From positions 496,001 through 560,000 of the forward strand of contig JAHLTZ010000003.1 of NCBI GenBank assembly GCA_025786725.1: DNA of 64,000 nucleotides. The letters run 5' to 3'. Source of the DNA: Syncephalis fuscata S228 (taxonomy: Eukaryota > Fungi > Zoopagomycota). The translations under genes were made by a program, and so were the position numbers. The notes under the pieces were generated by a model. That model was not told where the DNA came from, did not search any database, and saw nothing but the letters and a program-made list of their open reading frames with translations. Of the stretch, positions 1-44,556 are shown one piece after another (within the stretch, counting starts at the first letter, position 1; each line of letters opens with the position of its first letter).

Positions 1-1587
1 TCGTCCATGTCCGGTACAGCTAGCCTATATGGGATTTGCCGGTACACTGGCTGCTGGGTGGTGCGACTACTTTATCGTTGATCCAATTGTATGTCCACCC
101 GAAACAGTAGCCTGGGAGAGATGGCGTGCTCGCTTATCCAACGGTCTACCTATTGAACAGCTACACGATAACGGTGACTGTGGACAAGATATTGATCCCG
201 AAGACGAAACAGAACCCGACTGGGTCTACAGTGAACGTCTTATCTATATGCCGCACTCCTACTTTGTTAACGATCATCGACAAGGTTTCCGCGAAGAAGA
301 TGAAGACGTTAATGCCGATGCTGAAACGAAATGGTCACACGAAGAAGACCGTCGTTGGCGTATGCGTCGACAAGTATTCCCTGGTCTACGTGACGATGTT
401 GTTGTTTTCGCCAACTTTAATCAGCTTTACAAGATAGATCCATGTATATTCCGAGCCTGGCTACGTATTCTAGCCAGTGTGCCTAATTCAATTTTATGGC
501 TACTCCGATTCCCTGTAGCTGGTGAACAGCACATTCTAAATACGGCCGAAGAATGGGCTGGTAAAGAAATAGCTTCTCGCATTGTATTTACAGGTAAATA
601 GATGTAACCTGCTATTAACCTGCCTATTAACCATAATATTATTATTTAGATGTTGCGGCAAAACAAATCCATATCCATCGTGGCCGAGTAGCTGATTTGT
701 TCCTTGATACACCAGAATGTAATGGACATACAACATCTACGGATATTCTATGGTCTGGTACACCAGTGTTAACATTACCACGACACTATCATAAAATGTG
801 TTCACGAGTAGCGGCTAGCATTGCCTTTGCTACTGGATACGGCGATGATATGGTGGTAGATACTGAAGAAGCCTATATTGCACGGGCTATTGAATATGCA
901 CGCACACTTTATTGGGATTATAGCTCTGATCCAATGCCGCCATCATCATTTGCCTCTACGGTCATAGCAGCCAACAATAGCAATAGTAACACCAGTCTTA
1001 TTGCTAATATGCCATCTTCCAATGCCCGTCTACCGCCTACACTACTCGATCAAGGCCATTCACCATTACCAAGAGCTGGTCTACATCGACGTGGCCATGG
1101 ACCATTAATGGAACTACGTAAAAAGCTATTCCTTACCCGTGATGTTTCACCATTATTCGATACTGGTCGTTGGGTACGCAATTTAGAAAAAGGTTACTGG
1201 GAAGCATGGCGACGATGGGCATCGGGTGATGAATTTACCATCGATGATAATTTTGATAAGAACGAGAATAACGATAGTTCAATAACTATAGAACAATTGA
1301 TGACTAAAACTGGCTGTATCCTTATTATGGACGACACCGATGGTGCAGCCTCAAGTCATTCTAATTATGCTACAAGTCAACCACGAATAGATAGCAACAG
1401 TAATACGATGATGACAACAACAACATCGACTACACCAGCTACTTCTAATTCAATATTGAATCAAGATATCCACCATTCTCATGATAGTCATAGTCATTTT
1501 ATAATGAACCACATTATCATCATGCAAATCATAGTCAATCTACTAGCAATAATAGTAATAGTCATCATAATGAAGTGGATAATATAA
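1..1587 (+). CDS. OGT: O-GlcNAc transferase (GT41), C-terminal catalytic part; 5' end outside the window
   Basis: Motifs FANFNQLYKIDP, ILWLLRFP, (intron ~594-649) DLFLDTPECNGHTT, SRVAAS and SPLFDT. The low-complexity tail may continue to ~1700 across a frameshift. Confidence 0.9.
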
Positions 1588-1959
1588 TGACGATAACAAA
1601 TATGGCTACTTTACCATGTTCTGACACTTCATTATCACAAAAAAGACGCTCAATTCATACGACATCACCCAGACCATCAGCTGCAGCGGCACTTAGTTAA
1701 CTAATCAGTAGATTCTACTTTTGTATTATATACTCTATCCATAATCATTATTATTATTATTATTATTATTCTATTGTTTGTAAAGTGGTTTAATAATATG
1801 AATACTCTTTCTCTTCTTTCTTTTCGCTTTATATAGCATTCTAACTAGCATTTAAAACCTTTATCAATGACTTAAATAAATCCCACTCATCTTTTATTAA
1901 CAACTACTATTTAATAATACTTTTTATTTATATTCTACATACACACATCTATTAGATAT

Positions 1960-4613
1960 TTAATCAAACTCTGCAGGCCATAATCGATCAAATACACTTC
2001 TACTATGGCCATTACTTCTTGGACCCGTGGTGGTTATTGTACTATTATTACCACGTTCATAGGTGGCCATATCAAATGACGAGGATGTCGATAAGAATAG
2101 ATCGTCACTTAACGGGGAACAATGATTCGAGTTGGTTGTACCATGTGAGAAACTAAGAATATCGTCACGATAAGATAGAAAACGAGCATGTCGATAAAGA
2201 GCATGCCATAATGTAAGTAATAAACGATAATTAGGATCAGCGGTTGTACCACGAGTTGGTCTACACCCACAATGTAATACAATGAGTTAGTTATTAGTTA
2301 ACAATCAATAGTAATACCAATGATAGATAGTTACCTTTCTACAAAAGCAATTGGATCCTCTAGACCATCAAGTAATACTTCACGATAGGATCCACTGGCT
2401 GTACGTCGAAGTGGTCGTGTTTTATAATGTTGTCCTGTTGTTGTTGTTGTTGTTGTTGTTTCTGTTGTTGTGTGGTGTGTGGTGTCAATACATACTTTAC
2501 TACTCGTACCTGTATGTTCATCATCCCACATACTCATCGCTTCTTCTTGTCGTTGTGCAGACCACACAGCATCGTTAGATGGTGTAGATGACCGACTATC
2601 TCTATTATTCGATGATCGATGTGTATAATAGATATCTGTAGTATCATCTATATTATGCCATGGTCTTTCTTTAATTGAACTGTATTGTTGTCGCTCTTTT
2701 TCTTCTTTTCTTCTCTTCTTCTTCTGTCAGAGTAGGTGTAAATGAGATACGCATTGGATCTTTGATATAACCAGGTGCAGTGGCCCGTTTCCGAACAGCA
2801 AATGAATGAAATAGTGTCTTGGATCGCATAGGTCGACCCATATCATATCGTATAGAAGATCGCCATCTTTATTGGTGTTGTTACTACGACTATTAGTATG
2901 GGTACTATCTTCATCGTCATAATAGTCATCCGTACTATTATTAATAAGTAGACCCGATGGATCTTCTGTTAAATGATGTCGTTGTTCAAATCGATAAGCG
3001 GCCATTGCATCGGGTGAATTGGAAAAATAGTTACTAGGATGCCACTATCATTTATTATTTAATATAAAGATTAAGATTAAGATTAATATGTTAATGGTTA
3101 AATACTAAACACTTACATTAACCGCATCAGAAAATACCAAGGCAGATTTGACTGATAAATCACCAATAGCATTCATAGATGCATGTACTAATGATTTAAT
3201 AGAAAATAAAGAATTACGTTTTTTGTTATGAATACTATGGTGGTGGTGGTTATGATGGTGTTGTAGTTGTGGTGGTGGTGGTAATTGATGGTGTTGAATA
3301 GTAGTGACTGGAAGGGATTCAGTTGATAATGGATCAATATTTGATTGAATAGGTGTAGTATGGATGGACATGTTATTCGTTACAGTAACTGTATTGGTAG
3401 GTGTTGTTGTTGTTGTTGGTGGTGGTGGTGATAAAGTATCAATATACACTAATTGACTATCTTCTTGGTGTACATTAATCGGTGAAGATGGATTAGATAC
3501 ATATGTAATATCTGTATCAATTAATGGTGTAGTAGCCATTGAATCAGTAATAGGCGATGCATTAGTAACAGGCACACCTGGGGCAATAGGTGTAGATGCC
3601 AATTCACTACGTAATGCTCTTAATTCTTCAGGTCGACCCAATACACGTGATACACTACCGTGAGAGGAACGGACTCGAGAACGGCCTATACTTTTAACAG
3701 CCCCATTACCATTTACCATGTCATGTTGACCATTCTCTTCTGTACAATAACTAGCACTGGATGAACGACGTAGTAGTAATTCCCAGGCCTGTTTTTGTTT
3801 TTGTTGTGTGATATGACTGGGTGGCAATGCTTCAATTGATGACGTAGATGGTGGCGATATAATAGCCGGTAACTTTTTAGTTGACTCTAGTTCTGGCGAT
3901 GATAGCATTTCAAAGTCTGAACTATCTGGACTAATCATTACCGGTGAGGTAATACCGTCACCAACATGGTTATCCTGTGTATTATTATTGGCGGTTATAT
4001 CAATGGGTGTATGAACAAGGTCATTGGTCGTATTTGTGACTGTTTCTACACTAGTAGATTTGGTGGTTGAAGCTAATTTGATACTAGGTGTTGTCAATGA
4101 AGTAGTGGCACTAATAATGGCTGCTGCACTAGCTTTAATAGAAGACCGATGATTTGATTGTGTACCACGTTGTTGTAATGATAAACTAAGTGGTGCAGGA
4201 ATACCGCCTACAGTGCCCGTACTGATACTTTGACCAGCATGGACTGGTGTTGATAATTGTCGACGTTGAGCAATAGTAGGCGGTGTTGTCACCAAGCCAT
4301 TATGTCCTTTTCGTTTTGTATAGCCTTTTCCATATCTGGTGGTTTCTTCGGTTGTTCTGCCCGATGCCGTGAGCAGTGGCGTTGAAGATAACGACGCTGA
4401 CGACGACGACAACGACGACGACGACAGCGGTAAACGATGAGGGCCGCCAGTCATCGTCGGTGTGGTCACCGTTGTCGTTGGCAACTCTACCCAGTCATCT
4501 TCACCACCTAGTGACGATAATGAATCAGAGGAAGAAGTAGAGGTAGAAGGAATGGCGTTGGCGGTAGAGATGTTAAGACGACCATGAGATGACGTCTTTT
4601 GTTTTTGAGACAT
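1960..4613 (-). CDS. Hypothetical Ser/Thr/His-rich, largely disordered protein (multi-exon)
   Basis: 502-aa ORF ending at a GTAAGT donor (~3115), further open segments at 2331-3045 and a last exon ending ...RLWPAEFD* at 1960. No recognisable domain. Confidence 0.5.
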
Positions 4614-21447: not shown

Positions 21448-21922
21448 TTTATAATGGTAGCTTTTGTATAGTTTGTTAGCATGAGCTGGCTACTTTCTCC
21501 ATTTTTATAAAATCGGATTGCTAAACAATAGCAGTTCAGTCTCATGTATTTATGATAATACCTTTCAGTAACTTACTATCGGGATTGATATTATTATGTG
21601 CAACACCAGCATAATGTAGAAATGCCACGGCTATTCACAGAGTTAATTCTCATTTATCAACCTCCAATAAAATTATTACCTTGCACTAGCATTTTGTAGC
21701 ATTCTGGAAGTACTTTGACTTTTTTTCGTCACTGATGCGGTAAAAAACGTACGGAACGAAAATAAATCTTGACGAGATGTGACCATACAGTAGTAATCTC
21801 CTACCCAGAAATCATGCAAAAGCTGAGACACCCACTTGCTTCCTTGTGCCAAAATATTATTAGAGTTCTTTGCTAATTGTATTTGCTAAATTAAACATGA
21901 ATGTTTAGTTCATGTTACATCG

Positions 21923-22363
21923 CTATAGAGCAAGCCTACGTACTCGTAAAATACGTTCATCGTGTTCGTTTTGTTTTTTATCCCGTGAACATTTAAGCGT
22001 CGCTCCACCAAAGTAATCATTGGTATAATACGCAGAGGCAATGGCCGTGTTTTCGTCCCGAAATATCCATTTGGAAATGCTGAGTCCCACCTGGCCGTAT
22101 ACATCATAATCTCCCGTATTTGCCAGTTTGAAGCCGTAGAGTCCACTGGTGAATGGCACTTTATCCCACAAGAATTCATTCATCGGCGGAAGAATTTCAT
22201 TGTCTGTATCTTCCGAATCGTAAATCGGGGATTTTCCAGTATCTTCTTCATGTTCTAGAGCCCATCGAACAACAGGATTGTTAATCACTACAACATTATT
22301 AACTGCTTTGGTTGTAGTGGCCAGCAAGCAGCAAATAGCAATAGTTGAAACAACTAAACGCAT
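21923..22363 (-). CDS. Small secreted protein of unknown function
   Basis: Signal peptide MRLVVSTIAICCLLATTTKA followed by a ~125-aa mature region. Confidence 0.65.
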   Translation of the reverse strand: MRLVVSTIAICCLLATTTKAVNNVVVINNPVVRWALEHEEDTGKSPIYDSEDTDNEILPPMNEFLWDKVPFTSGLYGFKLANTGDYDVYGQVGLSISKWIFRDENTAIASAYYTNDYFGGATLKCSRDKKQNEHDERILRVRRLAL

Positions 22364-23234
22364 TGTGGTCAGCAATTTATTCTAGCAGCCGGTGTTTATA
22401 TAAAATATTATAGCTTTTATGCAATAGCTATATGGACTGTATGGTGACGATAACTTTACGAATATTAAAAGTACAATAATATTGCAAAGTGCTTTAAATA
22501 ATTTTATTTTATTAAACATAAAAAGTAAGGACCATGTGGCTAATAAACATTCTTTTTAACCGCCGAACAATGCCATAAATAACGTAAAAGCACGATGCAA
22601 CTATTTATGGCAATTCTAATTAAACATTAGTCGTTCTTATTCGGTAATTTTCCAACGTTTATCACGACAACTAAAATGTCAGTTGATGGTGTTAACAATA
22701 ACCTGAATTATTAAAAAATACCCAAAAGTATGATTGCATTAGATAGTAATGTTTATCTATGTTCGCATGTATCTACACGTATAGTTGAAACAATAAACGA
22801 AAGATGTAAATGATAAACGTGGAGCATGTTATATTTTGAATTCAATACGCAAATAAATCAGTTAAACTAATGGAGCAAACAAAACAAAATTCATCCATGT
22901 TATCTAGCAAAGTAGCATGTTACTTTGGCAAATAAACGACGGACGAATACACTGGAATGTTAACGCTGAGTATAATGGTTTTACGCATCAATAAAACGTC
23001 AGAGCGAGAAGTCAAATAATATAAATGCTCAGATAACGAGACCAAGCTAATAAGTAGAATCCCGAGTTTAATCAAATGATTAACTCGCTATAATACCATA
23101 TATAACTTGCGGCCATTGTTATCCTTCAAATGGGCGATAGCTTTTCAGTATTACTATGTAATATTATATTTGAAAAGCGGTACGTCCAAATGTGCTTAAA
23201 CACGTCACCATTTTGCAGAAATAGAATGGTTTAG

Positions 23235-23971
23235 TCAGACAGACTCGTCCAACAACCGCTCAATCTCTGGAATGAAGGAGAAAGGTTCTTCGTTGGGTGC
23301 ATACCGTTTTACGGGTTCACCATTACGATCAATAAGAACTATATGACAATGTTAAGCCATATAGATAGTAGGTAACAAATCATGCTTACCTTGGAAAAGT
23401 TCCACTTGATTGCATTAAACATAAAGCCTTTCTGCTTCTGCTTCAGGTAGACATAAAGCGGATGTGCATTAGAGCCGTTGACATCGATCTTGTCGAACAT
23501 ATCGAATTCCACGCCAAAGCCGGCGGCAAATTCTTTAATCTCTTCGTTGGTGCCCGGTTCTGTAATAAAAATTAGTCGTTTGTTTGCACATTGTTACAGT
23601 TTTTGATTTAAAAACTTACCTTGACTGCCGAACTGGTTGCAGGGAAAGCCGAGGATGCGCAAACCACGCTCGCGGTAGCGCTGATCGAGCTGAACTAGCT
23701 GGGTGTAGTTCAGCTAATATGCAATGATATTAAGCTGGTTAGCAATCGTAGCACATGCATATCTGCCTATAAACAACGTTACCTTTGTAAAACCTCACTT
23801 GGAGGCTACATTGACGACAAGGACAACCTGGCCACGGTATTGCTCCATGGACACCTCATTGCCATCAATGTCAAGGGCGGTAAAGTCGTAGAAATTCTAG
23901 TTGGTCAAAATAATTCAGTTAGAGTGGTTTTAAAAAAGATGTAACTGTTCTACCTTCGACGAATCCGCCAT
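23235..23971 (-). CDS. GPX4: Glutathione peroxidase, GPx4/PHGPx-like, with in-frame TGA (Sec) at the catalytic position
   Basis: Five exons: MADSSK|[33 protein letters not shown][TGA]GFTK|[31 protein letters not shown]|[57 protein letters not shown]|[15 protein letters not shown]... TGA at 23797-23795. An in-frame upstream ATG lies at 24211. Confidence 0.9.
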
Positions 23972-26150
23972 TGTTTCGTTGTTGTCGTCAGTCTCTTCTG
24001 GACTGATATCGGGTGTGTTCTGTTGCTGTGAAGTAAAAGATACAGTTTTGTCAGTTGCAGACAAACAAATACTTGAGGTAGATGGGTCGGGAGAAAGAAG
24101 TGTTCTACCGAGGGGTGCTAACGAATAACGATGGTAGTTGAGCTCGGAATAATGTAGGCCGATAAGAAAGGAAGGCCCAACAAGGCGAGCCAACCTCCAA
24201 GTTGGTTTCATACTCGACCTACACAACAACTGTATTAGTAATCTAGAACAAAAGCTATAGCAGTGTTGCAGTTGTCAAGCAAGCAGTAGCGAGCGAGACA
24301 GAGTGTCAGTTTGCATAAACAATGGATATGCTAGTGCACTACAACAAGCCATGACGTACCTCGAATAATGGGGAAAAGATATGACACCAATGTCTGGTGA
24401 ATCGAACAGTTTGTTATTGGAGTAAATAATAGAGTAGCCAACCATAATGCGATTATTAGCTATATTCGTTACAACTACACACATATTATCCATTTTAGCA
24501 ATAATATATAATTTATTTAGTTAATTGCCATTTCTGTTCTTTACTAACATATTTTAATAAATATGTGTCGTGTGCTGTTTAACATTACTATACAATTAAC
24601 TTTTATATTAATAATTTATTATTGGTTAATGTGCTCTGAAGTCTAAATAACTAGATTAAACACTACACATTTGTTCTAATAAACATGATGACGGATGGTG
24701 AGTGACATCAGCCATTAAAATGCTCATCATTGTAGATTCATTATCCAGTATGCATATACCCTTTATCCATCTATACCATTAAACATCATATACTCATACT
24801 ATACTATATATCGTCCTATGATGGATATCGAGCAGAAATGTAGTTTATATTGTTTAATGCAAAATAATCAAAGCCTTTATAGCTATTTGAACATAAGAAC
24901 AAGTATAAATACATTAACGATAAAATCATCGATAATACTGATTGTCCTGCAATGTAGCATCAGTGTTTATAGCACAGTAGTAATCAACTAATTGCCATAT
25001 CTACAATGTAATAAATATCATAGATTTATTGAATTTGTATGTATAATACCGTGCTTGTAACACTGTATATTAATATTTATCTCTTTGGTATTGGCGTATC
25101 AGTTATGATATGTATAGCACGCCTTCGACGTTTCTGTCGAAATTATAAGTAAATAGTTATCTTTAAATATATTGATTAGTTTTTGTTGATATTTCAAACG
25201 TTTATTTTTTAATTGATCCAGATGATGGCTAGCCAATAATTTTTGTAGCTTAGTAATGTGCAATGGCTATTGAAGGCTACGCCTATGTACAATTTGTTAT
25301 GTACACTTGAGCTTTTAAAAAGATTATAGCTACATTAACTACTGTAACAAGACAGTAGATAACCATCAGATTATAATAGTAAAGTGTTGCGCTATATACT
25401 GCACATTAATTATAGGCATACAACTAACAGCCAATAGTAAAATAAATAATGAAATTGTGTACAAATGACTTTGGCTTTGTTCATCTGGAAGCATCATTCT
25501 TACGCAACAGTATAAACGTCATAGTAGGCCGTAACGATAGCTTGTCAGTTACCAAGTAAATATTGTTGATACTACAAATCGCCGATCGAGTAAATAACCC
25601 ACCCATCAGTGTTCATTCTATTAGTCATACCATGCTTTAATGCATTGCAGGATATGACGTAACAGCTGCTAAATCTAAATTTGAACTTGATCATATTGAC
25701 CCAATCCGGTTTCAGCCGAAGACATCGTTAGTGATACGCACTGCAGAGCCGTTGTTTAAATTGCTTTGCAGAATGGCGTGCTGTATCATATAAGAACCGT
25801 GGAAACCGCAGTCTCACGCTTACTTGACACCCACACGTCTATCCAAAACCTTATACGTATACACGCCTAGTAGTTAGTTAGTACACGGCCAAGCAAAAGG
25901 CACCTATTGACACGGTCATCTACTTGCAGTATTGTCGCTTACTTTACTAAGTATCACGTGGATGCCTTGACACACTTGTCCGACAGCTTATTTCGCGTGA
26001 TTAGTACCTCTTGAATCGCAAGACCGACCACAAGCTTTATATTTCAACTCTCAGGCTCACTACTCTTATCGCTCTCTTTACAACATACATATACATTTCG
26101 TTTTTACCTTTGCATCGGCGATTACTTTAACACAACCTCTTTATTTCAAC

Positions 26151-42416: not shown

Positions 42417-43322
42417 ATTGAAATAGCTATTACATAGATTGAGACTTCAAGAAATGTGTAGCTGTGTGTTTGCAGAAAATAAGATAATAGTTACTATATT
42501 GGAAAATGAGAACTCGATACTTTTATCATATATATATATATTTATAAATCAGTAAAGTTTAGAATATACAAATTACCGCAAAAACTAAATCATTAGATTT
42601 ATAGAAATAAAATACTAGTTTGAGATATGCTATTGCCATTTACAAAACTGTAGAACGTGGACTGACTAAACAAATAAAGCATCAATACTTAGTACAAAAT
42701 GCCACTCTGATAACACATGCCATGCTAAATTAAAACATATCTATCAAGTAGCTCAACATCCACTGTCAAGTGTAGATATAGTGCGTTATTTTCACTGAAT
42801 AGTGCCAATTGTCAGATAAACAAATAAAATTAATTGTAACACTCCTTATTGTACATCTAGTTATTATGTCATGTGATATGGCGAAAGAAATCCAGAATGG
42901 CGACAAAGTGACACAAAAGGCTATATTAGCCGTATACATGTCTGCGTTCTAATCTCTAAATTCAATCAATTCTCGCATTTTTATTAGTTAATAAAACAAT
43001 TGTTTATTTAGCAGCGAAATTAAAGCAATGTAATTTTATAGACAACTTGTTGCATCAATTATTAGCAATCGTACAAGTTATTTAAATTGATTATAATAGC
43101 TATATCCTAATAACATTAAAATATGTCAAGTTGTTTATAATAATGGTTTGAACGAAACAAAGTAGTAGCAATATGCTGATTTCCGTCAGTCTTGAACGGA
43201 TTTTGGGGACCGGTAGCAGTCGCTATTTACCTAACAAGCTAATCCATTCTAACATTGCTTTAACATTTGCATTATTAAGTATCAATGATCTGCTAACAAC
43301 TTAAAATGTCAATTTGCCTTAC

Positions 43323-43354
<32 letters not shown>

Positions 43355-43481
43355 TGATGATGATGATGATGCAACAATTGGCATCATCCAAGCCTTATTC
43401 CGTCATCCTTATCGACCCCACCTATTGCGTTTTCAATCCTTTTGCTATTATCACCTCTCAACTATCATAGTGTCGAGCAAC

Positions 43482-44556
43482 ATGACTATCAAAGCACAAC
43501 AGTATGGCAAGGACCGTATTCGTTTGGTTAAAGTAGTTCGTGGAGCCAACGCTTGGCAAGATTTACATGAATTGACGGTAAGATTATGATGGCGAGCTAG
43601 TTTAGCATAACTAACACTGTAGTATACGTGTAGGTACGTGTACTGCTCGAGGGCGACTTTGAAGCCTCGTATACACACGCCGATAATACACTCGTTATTG
43701 CAACTGACTCAATGAAGAACACGGTCTATGCATTGGCCAAACAAAGCGAGCTTGTAGGACAGCCAGAACTATTTGCTCAAGTCGTGGCCCGCCATTTCCT
43801 CGATACTTACCCACATGTTAGTGGCGCGAATGTACGCGTCCATAAGCATCGATGGGCTCGACTAACAGTCGATGACCAGCTGCATCCACACTCATTCCGA
43901 CGCGACTCAAGTGAGCTTCGAGTTGCTGAAGCGCATGTCCGTCGCACGGCTAGCAAGAGCCACTACGAGCTAAGCTTGACCTCAGGCATTACTGGCCTAC
44001 TTGTTCTAAAGACGACAGGTTCAGCTTTTACCAACTTCTTACGCGACCAATTTACAACACTACCTGAGGCAGAGGATCGTATTCTTTCGACTGTTGTCGA
44101 TGCTAATTGGGTGTACCGCACGCAACAGCTGCCTGCTGCTAAGCTTACCGGCGATGCGTGGAAGGCGGCAGCAGCCAATCCTGGCAATAGAATTGCTAGT
44201 GATATTGACTACGAAGGCATCTACCAAGCGGTGCGTGATATTACCCTGACTGTATTCTCAAACGACCAGAGTGCATCAGTTCAAGCGACGCTTTACCGTA
44301 TGGCCCAGCAGATTCTTGACCGAGCACCAGAGGTCAACCTAGTGAGCTATGCCTTGCCTAACAAGCATGTATTTACGGTCAATTTGGAGCCATTTGGGCA
44401 ATCAAACGTTGGCAAAGATGCAACTATTTTTATGCCCTTTGACGATCCTGCTGGTAAGCAATTACTACTATCATTTCACATCTTTAACTGACACGTTTAT
44501 TTATTATAGGTCTTATTACAGCTACAATTACCCGCCACGCTGGAGCGAAACTCTAA
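43482..44556 (+). CDS. UOX: Urate oxidase (uricase), peroxisomal
   Basis: YGKDRIRLVKV, IATDSMKNTVYALAK, VLKTTGSAF, SASVQATLY, LPNKH; C-terminal PTS1 -AKL; two introns. Confidence 0.95.

Follow-up and report, generated by a model that had tools for sequence, protein, structure and literature searches.

A candidate selenocysteine-containing glutathione peroxidase of the GPx4 type in the fungus Syncephalis fuscata, with a SECIS-like element in its 3′ untranslated region

Fungi were long regarded as being without selenoproteins, and since 2019 a few early-diverging species have been known to use selenocysteine (Sec); glutathione peroxidase (GPx) is the archetypal selenoenzyme. A GPx gene of the mycoparasite Syncephalis fuscata S228 (Fungi; Zoopagomycota) carries an in-frame UGA at its peroxidatic codon, which raises the question of whether this codon is read as Sec, is decoded in some other way, or marks a gene in decay or an error of the assembly. 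The gene lies on the minus strand of a stretch of 64,000 nucleotides (contig JAHLTZ010000003.1 of assembly GCA_025786725.1, positions 496,001 to 560,000), hereafter the window, to which all positions refer unless another contig or locus is named. A first-pass annotation made from the sequence alone had read the locus as a Sec-containing GPx4, and this reading is supported here by RNA, by the Sec machinery of the genome, by conservation of the TGA, by a rate of nonsynonymous substitution (dN) far below that of synonymous substitution (dS) and by a structure in the 3′ untranslated region (3′UTR) resembling a selenocysteine insertion sequence (SECIS). On sequence evidence, the locus is with high probability a functional selenoprotein gene of S. 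fuscata, predicted to encode a monomeric GPx4-type (phospholipid-hydroperoxide-type) peroxidase with Sec at UGA 23797-23795.

Structure and expression of the GPx gene

The gene comprises five exons (Table 1) separated by four introns, all of which are of the GT-AG type and borne out by RNA contigs. Protein searches were performed with single exons, with the uninterrupted open reading frame (ORF) of a paralogous copy on another contig of the genome (C301), and with the NCBI models of the two loci (P0001 and P0002). Three exons scored 45.5, 41.5 and 37.9 bits with the Pfam family GSHPx (PF00255), whose cut-off is 27, and the closest solved structures in a PDB search were mammalian GPX4 chains (E about 1e-50). 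The UGA codon sits directly after NVASK and is followed by GFTK, as seen in both the sequence and its translations, and the catalytic Gln (CNQFGSQ/EPG) and Trp and Asn (IKWNFSK) were located in the exon translations; the codon and these residues are as the first-pass annotation had described them. It had also reported the absence of a resolving Cys, which was borne out by the exon translation and the alignment with GPX4, the EIKEFAAG block, opposite EIKEF.A.Y.V.F of GPX4, having Ala and no Cys at the resolving position of 2-Cys GPx enzymes. No oligomerisation or subunit-interface loop is inserted relative to the GPX4-derived chain, the gaps in this alignment being errors of the NCBI model.

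RNA data for the locus came from one public run (X1, 2017, Logan contigs). The contigs skip introns 2, 3 and 4 exactly, and intron 1 is bridged by loose ends; since they match the window and not the C301 paralog, and skip the introns, their source is the spliced transcript of this gene. The contig bridging intron 2 extends to either side by 32 letters or more and thus covers positions 23795-23797; no difference is listed there, and the UGA is therefore present in the mRNA, which answers the question of whether TGA would be found in transcripts. The last exon is one base off the GPx frame in the window sequence when joined through the sole available GT..AG intron 4 (51 nt), and runs into an early stop. 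At the intron 4 joint, an RNA contig reads aag-TTC-Ctt-att-gat (KFLID), one C more than the assembly, which has aag|ttcttattgat and is short of this C between 23336 and 23335; the C301 copy likewise has ttcctt at the start of exon 5. Given the extra C in the mRNA, the shift of frame in exon 5 is due either to a base dropped from the assembly or to a difference between strains. The earlier description of the gene as intact and canonically spliced thus stands as regards splicing, all four introns being seen in RNA, whereas intactness applies to the mRNA and not to the assembled last exon with its 1-nt frame break.

Towards the 5′ end, a 409-nt RNA contig runs from exon 2 through exon 1 to 24345, and the upstream ATG at 24211 is therefore transcribed. 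The frame is open from this ATG into MADSSK, and the first 21 residues are basic in character and contain no acidic residue. S. plumigaleata has a counterpart of this presequence (MKPAWRLTHLIGPAFLVGIHYSELN), the pattern MKP.WRL..GP.FL.G.HYSELN being common to S. plumigaleata and in part to an environmental mRNA; the environmental sequence L019 retains LHYSELN, with synonymous differences only. It is very likely, judging from these comparisons, that the long form from ATG 24211 is translated. This start would add a basic, probably mitochondrial, N-terminal presequence, and, as for mammalian GPX4, the internal ATG at 23971 could be the start of a shorter product. The idea of an in-frame upstream ATG with a presequence, already put forward on first reading, gains from the RNA reaching 24345 and from the conservation in S. 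plumigaleata. A single RNA/assembly difference was noted at 24229 (A>G, plus strand), in the 5′ leader.

Conservation of the UGA codon and the Sec-decoding machinery

Orthologs were searched for with the uninterrupted ORF of the paralogous C301 copy, which returned both S. fuscata loci (P0002 for this gene and P0001 for C301) and relatives in S. pseudoplumigaleata, S. plumigaleata, Thamnocephalis sphaerospora and Jimgerdemannia flammicorona, as well as two JGI metatranscriptome contigs. TGA occupies the same codon in S. pseudoplumigaleata (L015), S. plumigaleata (L016) and T. sphaerospora (L017), and is also present in the two environmental sequences, which are spliced mRNAs (VASK-TGA-GMTK in L019 and VASD-TGA-GLTK in L020). 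In J. flammicorona (Endogonales), the stretch TGA-GGT-TTG-ACC-AAG (U-G-L-T-K; L021, about 680-694) constitutes a micro-exon of 15 nt flanked by two GT-AG introns, making this gene a candidate Sec-GPx in Mucoromycota. T. sphaerospora has two GPx paralogs, one with TGA (L017, NVASK-U-GLTK) and one with TGC (L018, NVASQ-C-GLTK); for the 3′UTR of the Sec gene, the contig ends 78 nt past the stop.

The sequence following the UGA bears the mark of strong purifying selection. Compared exon by exon with the Syncephalis orthologs, exons 3, 4 and 5 gave dN values of 0.014-0.09 and dS values of 0.5-2.7, and for exon 3 the comparison with Sec-form orthologs (Syncephalis spp., environmental L019 and Thamnocephalis) gave 0.014-0.057 and 0.5-2.6, respectively; dN/dS is about 0.03-0.1 over exons 3-5. 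With dN far below dS, the sequence downstream of the UGA must be translated and constrained, which in turn was taken to exclude a pseudogene or a simple stop. The NCBI models of the five species concerned (P0004, P0112, P0005, P0010 and P0002, for L015, L016, L017, L021 and the window, respectively) omit the active-site peptide, the TGA having been bypassed by the splicing that the predictor chose, and that of S. fuscata also adds a spurious ‘KVSMIF’ to bypass the assembly indel.

The genome of S. fuscata (29.4 Mb in 371 contigs) was searched for the machinery of Sec decoding. It contains two tRNA-Sec genes (76.9 bits, cut-off 47; called SeC with anticodon tca by ARAGORN), a SepSecS gene, and an SPS2 gene (contig C235; L013) that is itself of the selenoprotein form, with an in-frame TGA in the GUGCK motif (about 515-520) and, about 55 nt past the stop, a canonical type II SECIS (L013, about 2029-2090) with AUGA, a helix II of about 12 bp, AAA and a mini-stem. 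The best matches to TIGR00475 were not eEFSec but EF-Tu, eEF1A, eIF2-gamma and an EF-G-like gene, and eEFSec was then found via its specific fourth domain (eEFSec_4th, PF21131), which scored 31.6 bits, over the cut-off, beside a SelB-type GTPase match. PSTK is represented by a PSTK-like exon, a partial match only, for which the top NCBIfam model is TIGR03575 (eukaryotic PSTK). Thus, among the components for which a genome search had been proposed, tRNA-Sec, SecS, SPS and eEFSec were all found, and PSTK as this partial exon. A profile search for SelenoH/W/T (PF10262) gave no match. Several machinery loci are doubled with equal scores (tRNA-Sec on C68/C132, eEFSec on C310/C62 and SepSecS on C223:888k/C242), with flanks that are alike and not identical (78-92% ungapped), and may be haplotigs or recent duplications; a further, inverted copy of SepSecS lies about 7 kb off on C223.

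A SECIS-like element in the distal 3′UTR and the alternative readings

The 3′UTRs of the three Syncephalis species, the C301 retrocopy and the environmental mRNA L019 were aligned without a structural reference. Two zones are apparent, a variable proximal part and a conserved distal part of ~220 nt, in which RNAalifold found a long-range helix between the 14 nt that follow an invariant CUGAC and the 13 nt that precede a (U/C)GA, likewise invariant. The pair counts for the element give 98.7% of cells paired; in this helix II (11 bp), all cells hold standard pairs, and 6 of the 11 pairs have changed on both sides; none of 500 shuffles matched this, and sliding the partner by 1-3 columns lowered pairing to 24-47%. 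The UGA of the 5′ strand and the GA of the 3′ strand flank helix II directly, in the register of the SECIS kink-turn (K-turn) quartet, in all five sequences. An invariant UAAAACC tops the helix on the 5′ strand, 15-16 nt from the core (usually about 9-13 nt), and helix I co-varies both in its inner part (CGC:GCG, UGC:GCA, CGU:GCG) and in its outer part (UUC:GAA, GUGUUC:GAACAC, CUC:GAG). The apex holds an insertion of ~105 nt, and the constrained fold has -35.5 kcal/mol against -39.1 kcal/mol for the minimum free energy (MFE) fold, a gap of 3.6 kcal/mol. The element shares with type II SECIS, such as that of SPS2, a helix I, an internal loop, a UGA...GA tandem sheared-pair core, a helix II, an unpaired A-run on the 5′ strand and another helix above, and differs from them in having C for A/G before the UGA, a longer helix II, an A-run 15-16 nt off the core and the large apical insertion, and in being missed by Rfam and by a canonical-pattern scan. 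The UGA would be recoded via this K-turn element (23016-22835), with SBP2 and eEFSec delivering Sec-tRNA at the codon, and the resulting enzyme would reduce (lipid) hydroperoxides using glutathione, which is proposed as the reductant because there is no resolving Cys.

Several points weigh against a Sec-encoding gene with this element. The core is CUGA and not AUGA, with C before the UGA in all five Syncephalis-type sequences, and we know of no SECIS that approaches the element in size. The covariation is based on four independent sequences only. The 3′ RNA contig stops at 23029, 13 nt short of the element, and no contig lies over 22744-22965, so that a major isoform may be one without SECIS. 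Selenium in the protein is, moreover, a prediction. Of little weight is the result of the Rfam SECIS models, which gave no match on 21500-25000, on 22790-23240 or genome-wide, since the same models also miss the canonical SPS2 SECIS (301-nt query, E<=10). The canonical-pattern scan does pick up the SPS2 SECIS and finds nothing canonical in the GPx 3′UTR. As to the end of the contig, assemblers simplify their graphs in such a way that a short, weaker distal branch could be clipped as a tip, and a strong proximal poly(A) site could branch the graph and so explain the end at 23029. The distal 3′UTR is included in transcripts, the C301 retrocopy resembling the gene from 24101 to 22807 and then ending in an A-run, and the environmental mRNA L019 carries the coding sequence and the entire SECIS-like element on one contig. 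Covariation, moreover, is selectable only in RNA.

The alternative that survives best, although improbable, is that the UGA is decoded as something other than Sec (read-through with Cys, Trp or Arg), or that it acts mainly as a regulated stop giving a short N-terminal peptide, the 3′UTR structure serving stability or localisation. It would fit the RNA contigs that end before the proposed SECIS, the non-canonical CUGA core and the failure of the pattern scan in this 3′UTR. It leaves aside that the genome has the Sec machinery and an SPS2 that is itself a UGA/SECIS gene, that the UGA stands exactly at the Sec position of Sec-GPx enzymes, and that a conserved helix with UGA and GA in K-turn register and an A-run on top occurs in five of five sequences. 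Less probable still is a decaying pseudogene, in which translation would end early at the TGA and the 1-nt shift of exon 5 would be a second lesion; both lesions are present in the window sequence and a related, broken-looking copy exists on C301, but the mRNA is without the frame break, RNA contigs of the spliced gene are abundant, five or more other taxa share the TGA at this codon, and dN is far below dS past it. That the true codon is TGC or TGT, as in the C301 copy, and the TGA a sequencing or assembly error can hardly be credited, even with one proven 1-nt assembly error in the same gene and TGC in the paralog, given that an RNA contig matching the window and not C301 spans the codon without difference and that TGA is also read in three further species, each assembled independently, and in two metatranscriptome contigs. 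The prediction of a Sec-containing GPx4 is thus preferred to all three.

Other candidate structures were considered and set aside. A UUGA...GA rod at 23129-23029, the top candidate of the pattern scan, was rejected as other species do not conserve it, and a GAGC:GCUC hairpin from RNAalifold was rejected as it is broken in L019. Two arrangements spotted by eye are not claimed, namely an outer helix of 23030-23017 with 22833-22820, which shows no compensatory changes, and an AUGA..AA..UGA arrangement in the environmental mRNA L020, which differs from the MFE fold. The motif CTGAC..GTAAAAC had 48 matches genome-wide against 31 for the control, the best lying antisense in an ORF, and these were attributed to chance; among metagenome contigs it had 36 matches, none adjoining a GPx. 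The proximal 3′UTR contains a strong hairpin, GCUUUUCA...UGAAAAGC (23096-23190, minus strand), with a weak mir-85-like Rfam match; the other species do not conserve it, and the C301 retrocopy has lost it by deletion.

Table 1. Features of the GPx gene and of its predicted SECIS-like element in the window.
Feature	Position	Strand	Evidence or remark
Upstream ORF, ATG 24316, 13 codons	24275-24316	-	Read from sequence; within RNA-covered 5′ leader
Exon 1	23954-24211 (or 23954-23971)	-	ORF and translation; RNA contig covers 23954-24345
Exon 1, long-form start ATG	24211-24209	-	Basic presequence MKPTWRLARLVGPSFL...
Exon 1, internal ATG (MADSSK)	23971-23969	-	Start chosen in NCBI model
Exon 2, NFYDF...NVASK-U-GFTK	23783-23896	-	Pfam GSHPx, 37.9 bits; RNA loose ends 23954/23898 and joint 23713->23783
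UGA at peroxidatic (Sec) codon	23795-23797	-	RNA contig bridging intron 2, no difference; TGA in L015, L016, L017, L019, L020
Exon 3, LNYTQ...FPCNQFGSQ, catalytic Gln	23620-23713	-	RNA joints 23713->23783 and 23559->23620
Exon 4, ...IKWNFSK, catalytic Trp and Asn, resolving Cys absent	23390-23559	-	Pfam GSHPx; GPX4 alignment
Exon 5, ...LLDESV-stop (stop TGA 23237-23235)	23235-23338	-	Frame analysis; extra base in RNA contig
3′UTR	22808-23234	-	Distal end ~22808 inferred from retrocopy C301 (end of similarity and A-run)
SECIS-like element, ~180 nt	22835-23016	-	RNAalifold, pair counts, constrained fold
Helix I	23016-23004 with 22850-22835	-	Found in five sequences
5′ core CUGA	23002-22999	-	Invariant CUGAC at 23002-22998
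Helix II	22997-22984 with 22873-22861	-	RNAalifold and pair counts
UAAAACC bulge	22983-22977	-	Invariant
Helix III, AGCG:UGCU	22967-22964 with 22877-22874	-	Continues above helix II
3′ core UGAU	22860-22857	-	Invariant (U/C)GA at 22860-22858; (U/C)GA(U/C) in five sequences

Relation to known selenoproteins and origin of the C301 copy

Typical fungal Cys-GPx enzymes, such as yeast Gpx1-3/Hyr1, are thioredoxin-dependent 2-Cys peroxidases with a peroxidatic Cys and a resolving Cys in an FC block. The S. fuscata gene shares with them PF00255 and the GPx4-like monomeric lineage, and differs in its UGA codon and in the Ala at the resolving position. With mammalian GPX4 (for example PDB 2OBI, 5H5Q and 6HKQ), the predicted enzyme shares UGA-encoded Sec as its peroxidatic residue, the catalytic Gln, Trp and Asn, an EIKEFAAG block that lacks a resolving Cys, the absence of an oligomerisation-loop insertion, a 3′UTR SECIS (here SECIS-like), an upstream in-frame ATG with a basic presequence and an internal ATG from which a short form may arise; it differs in its fungal host (Zoopagomycotina), in having CUGA for AUGA and in the size of its SECIS-like element (about 180 nt). 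Neither the family of the enzyme nor the principle of recoding is new, whereas the kingdom is new for Sec-GPx and the SECIS architecture is unusual.

Seven selenoprotein families have been described in fungi, namely SPS, AhpC, MsrA, DI-like, TR, SelenoU and SelenoH (Mariotti et al., 2018 preprint, 10.1101/314781). GPx is absent from these seven, as the first-pass annotation had stated. The Sec-using fungi of that study belong to Harpellales, Bifiguratus and Gonapodya, with none from Zoopagales, and a later review lists nine Sec-using fungal species only, seven of them Harpellales. S. fuscata shares with these fungi an early-diverging position, a eukaryotic Sec machinery, an SPS selenoprotein and a SECIS that often goes undetected: SECISearch3 found SECIS in 5 of 16 fungal selenoprotein genes and none in the other 11 (10.1101/314781). 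No report of a fungal Sec-GPx was found in a literature search, in which the study of Mariotti et al. was covered as the 2018 preprint. GPx4 would thus join the fungal selenoproteome and Sec use would extend to Zoopagomycotina, in a setting where the selenoprotein is concealed in the public gene models of at least five species, whose splicing bypasses the UGA. The SECIS-like element has covariation in its favour, conforms neither in size nor in sequence to the rules of SECIS finders, and makes the question of the ‘missing’ fungal SECIS directly testable; if true, it would be a concrete case of the ‘distinct fungal SECIS variants’ postulated for the 11 of 16 SECIS-less genes (10.1101/314781). 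A native fungal Sec-insertion cassette could also aid the expression of selenoproteins in fungi.

A broader scenario, which is favoured here with some reserve, is that an ancestral Sec-GPx4, converted to the Cys form or lost in other fungi, persisted in Zoopagales and possibly in Endogonales, and that its UGA is recoded by an undescribed form of SECIS, distinguished by CUGA in its core, an extended helix II and an apical insertion of more than 100 nt; the C301 copy would then be a Sec-to-Cys conversion caught soon after retroposition. This copy (contig C301, ~42700-43560, minus strand, corresponding to L004 ~940-1975, minus strand; NCBI model P0001) is a semi-processed retrocopy of the GPx mRNA, in which introns 1-3 are gone and intron 4, which has a GC donor, is kept. 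TGC stands at the Sec codon, with ELG in place of EPG, one Phe codon lost and a terminal A-run, together with a 1-nt deletion of a C, possibly an assembly error, and a 68-nt deletion in the proximal 3′UTR. As TGA is found in all orthologs, it is the ancestral state, and Sec was therefore replaced by Cys in the C301 copy once retroposition had taken place. Among the RNA contigs, another and weaker one at the joint of intron 2 of the S. fuscata gene fits the sequence of C301 and may represent its transcript, present at a lower level.

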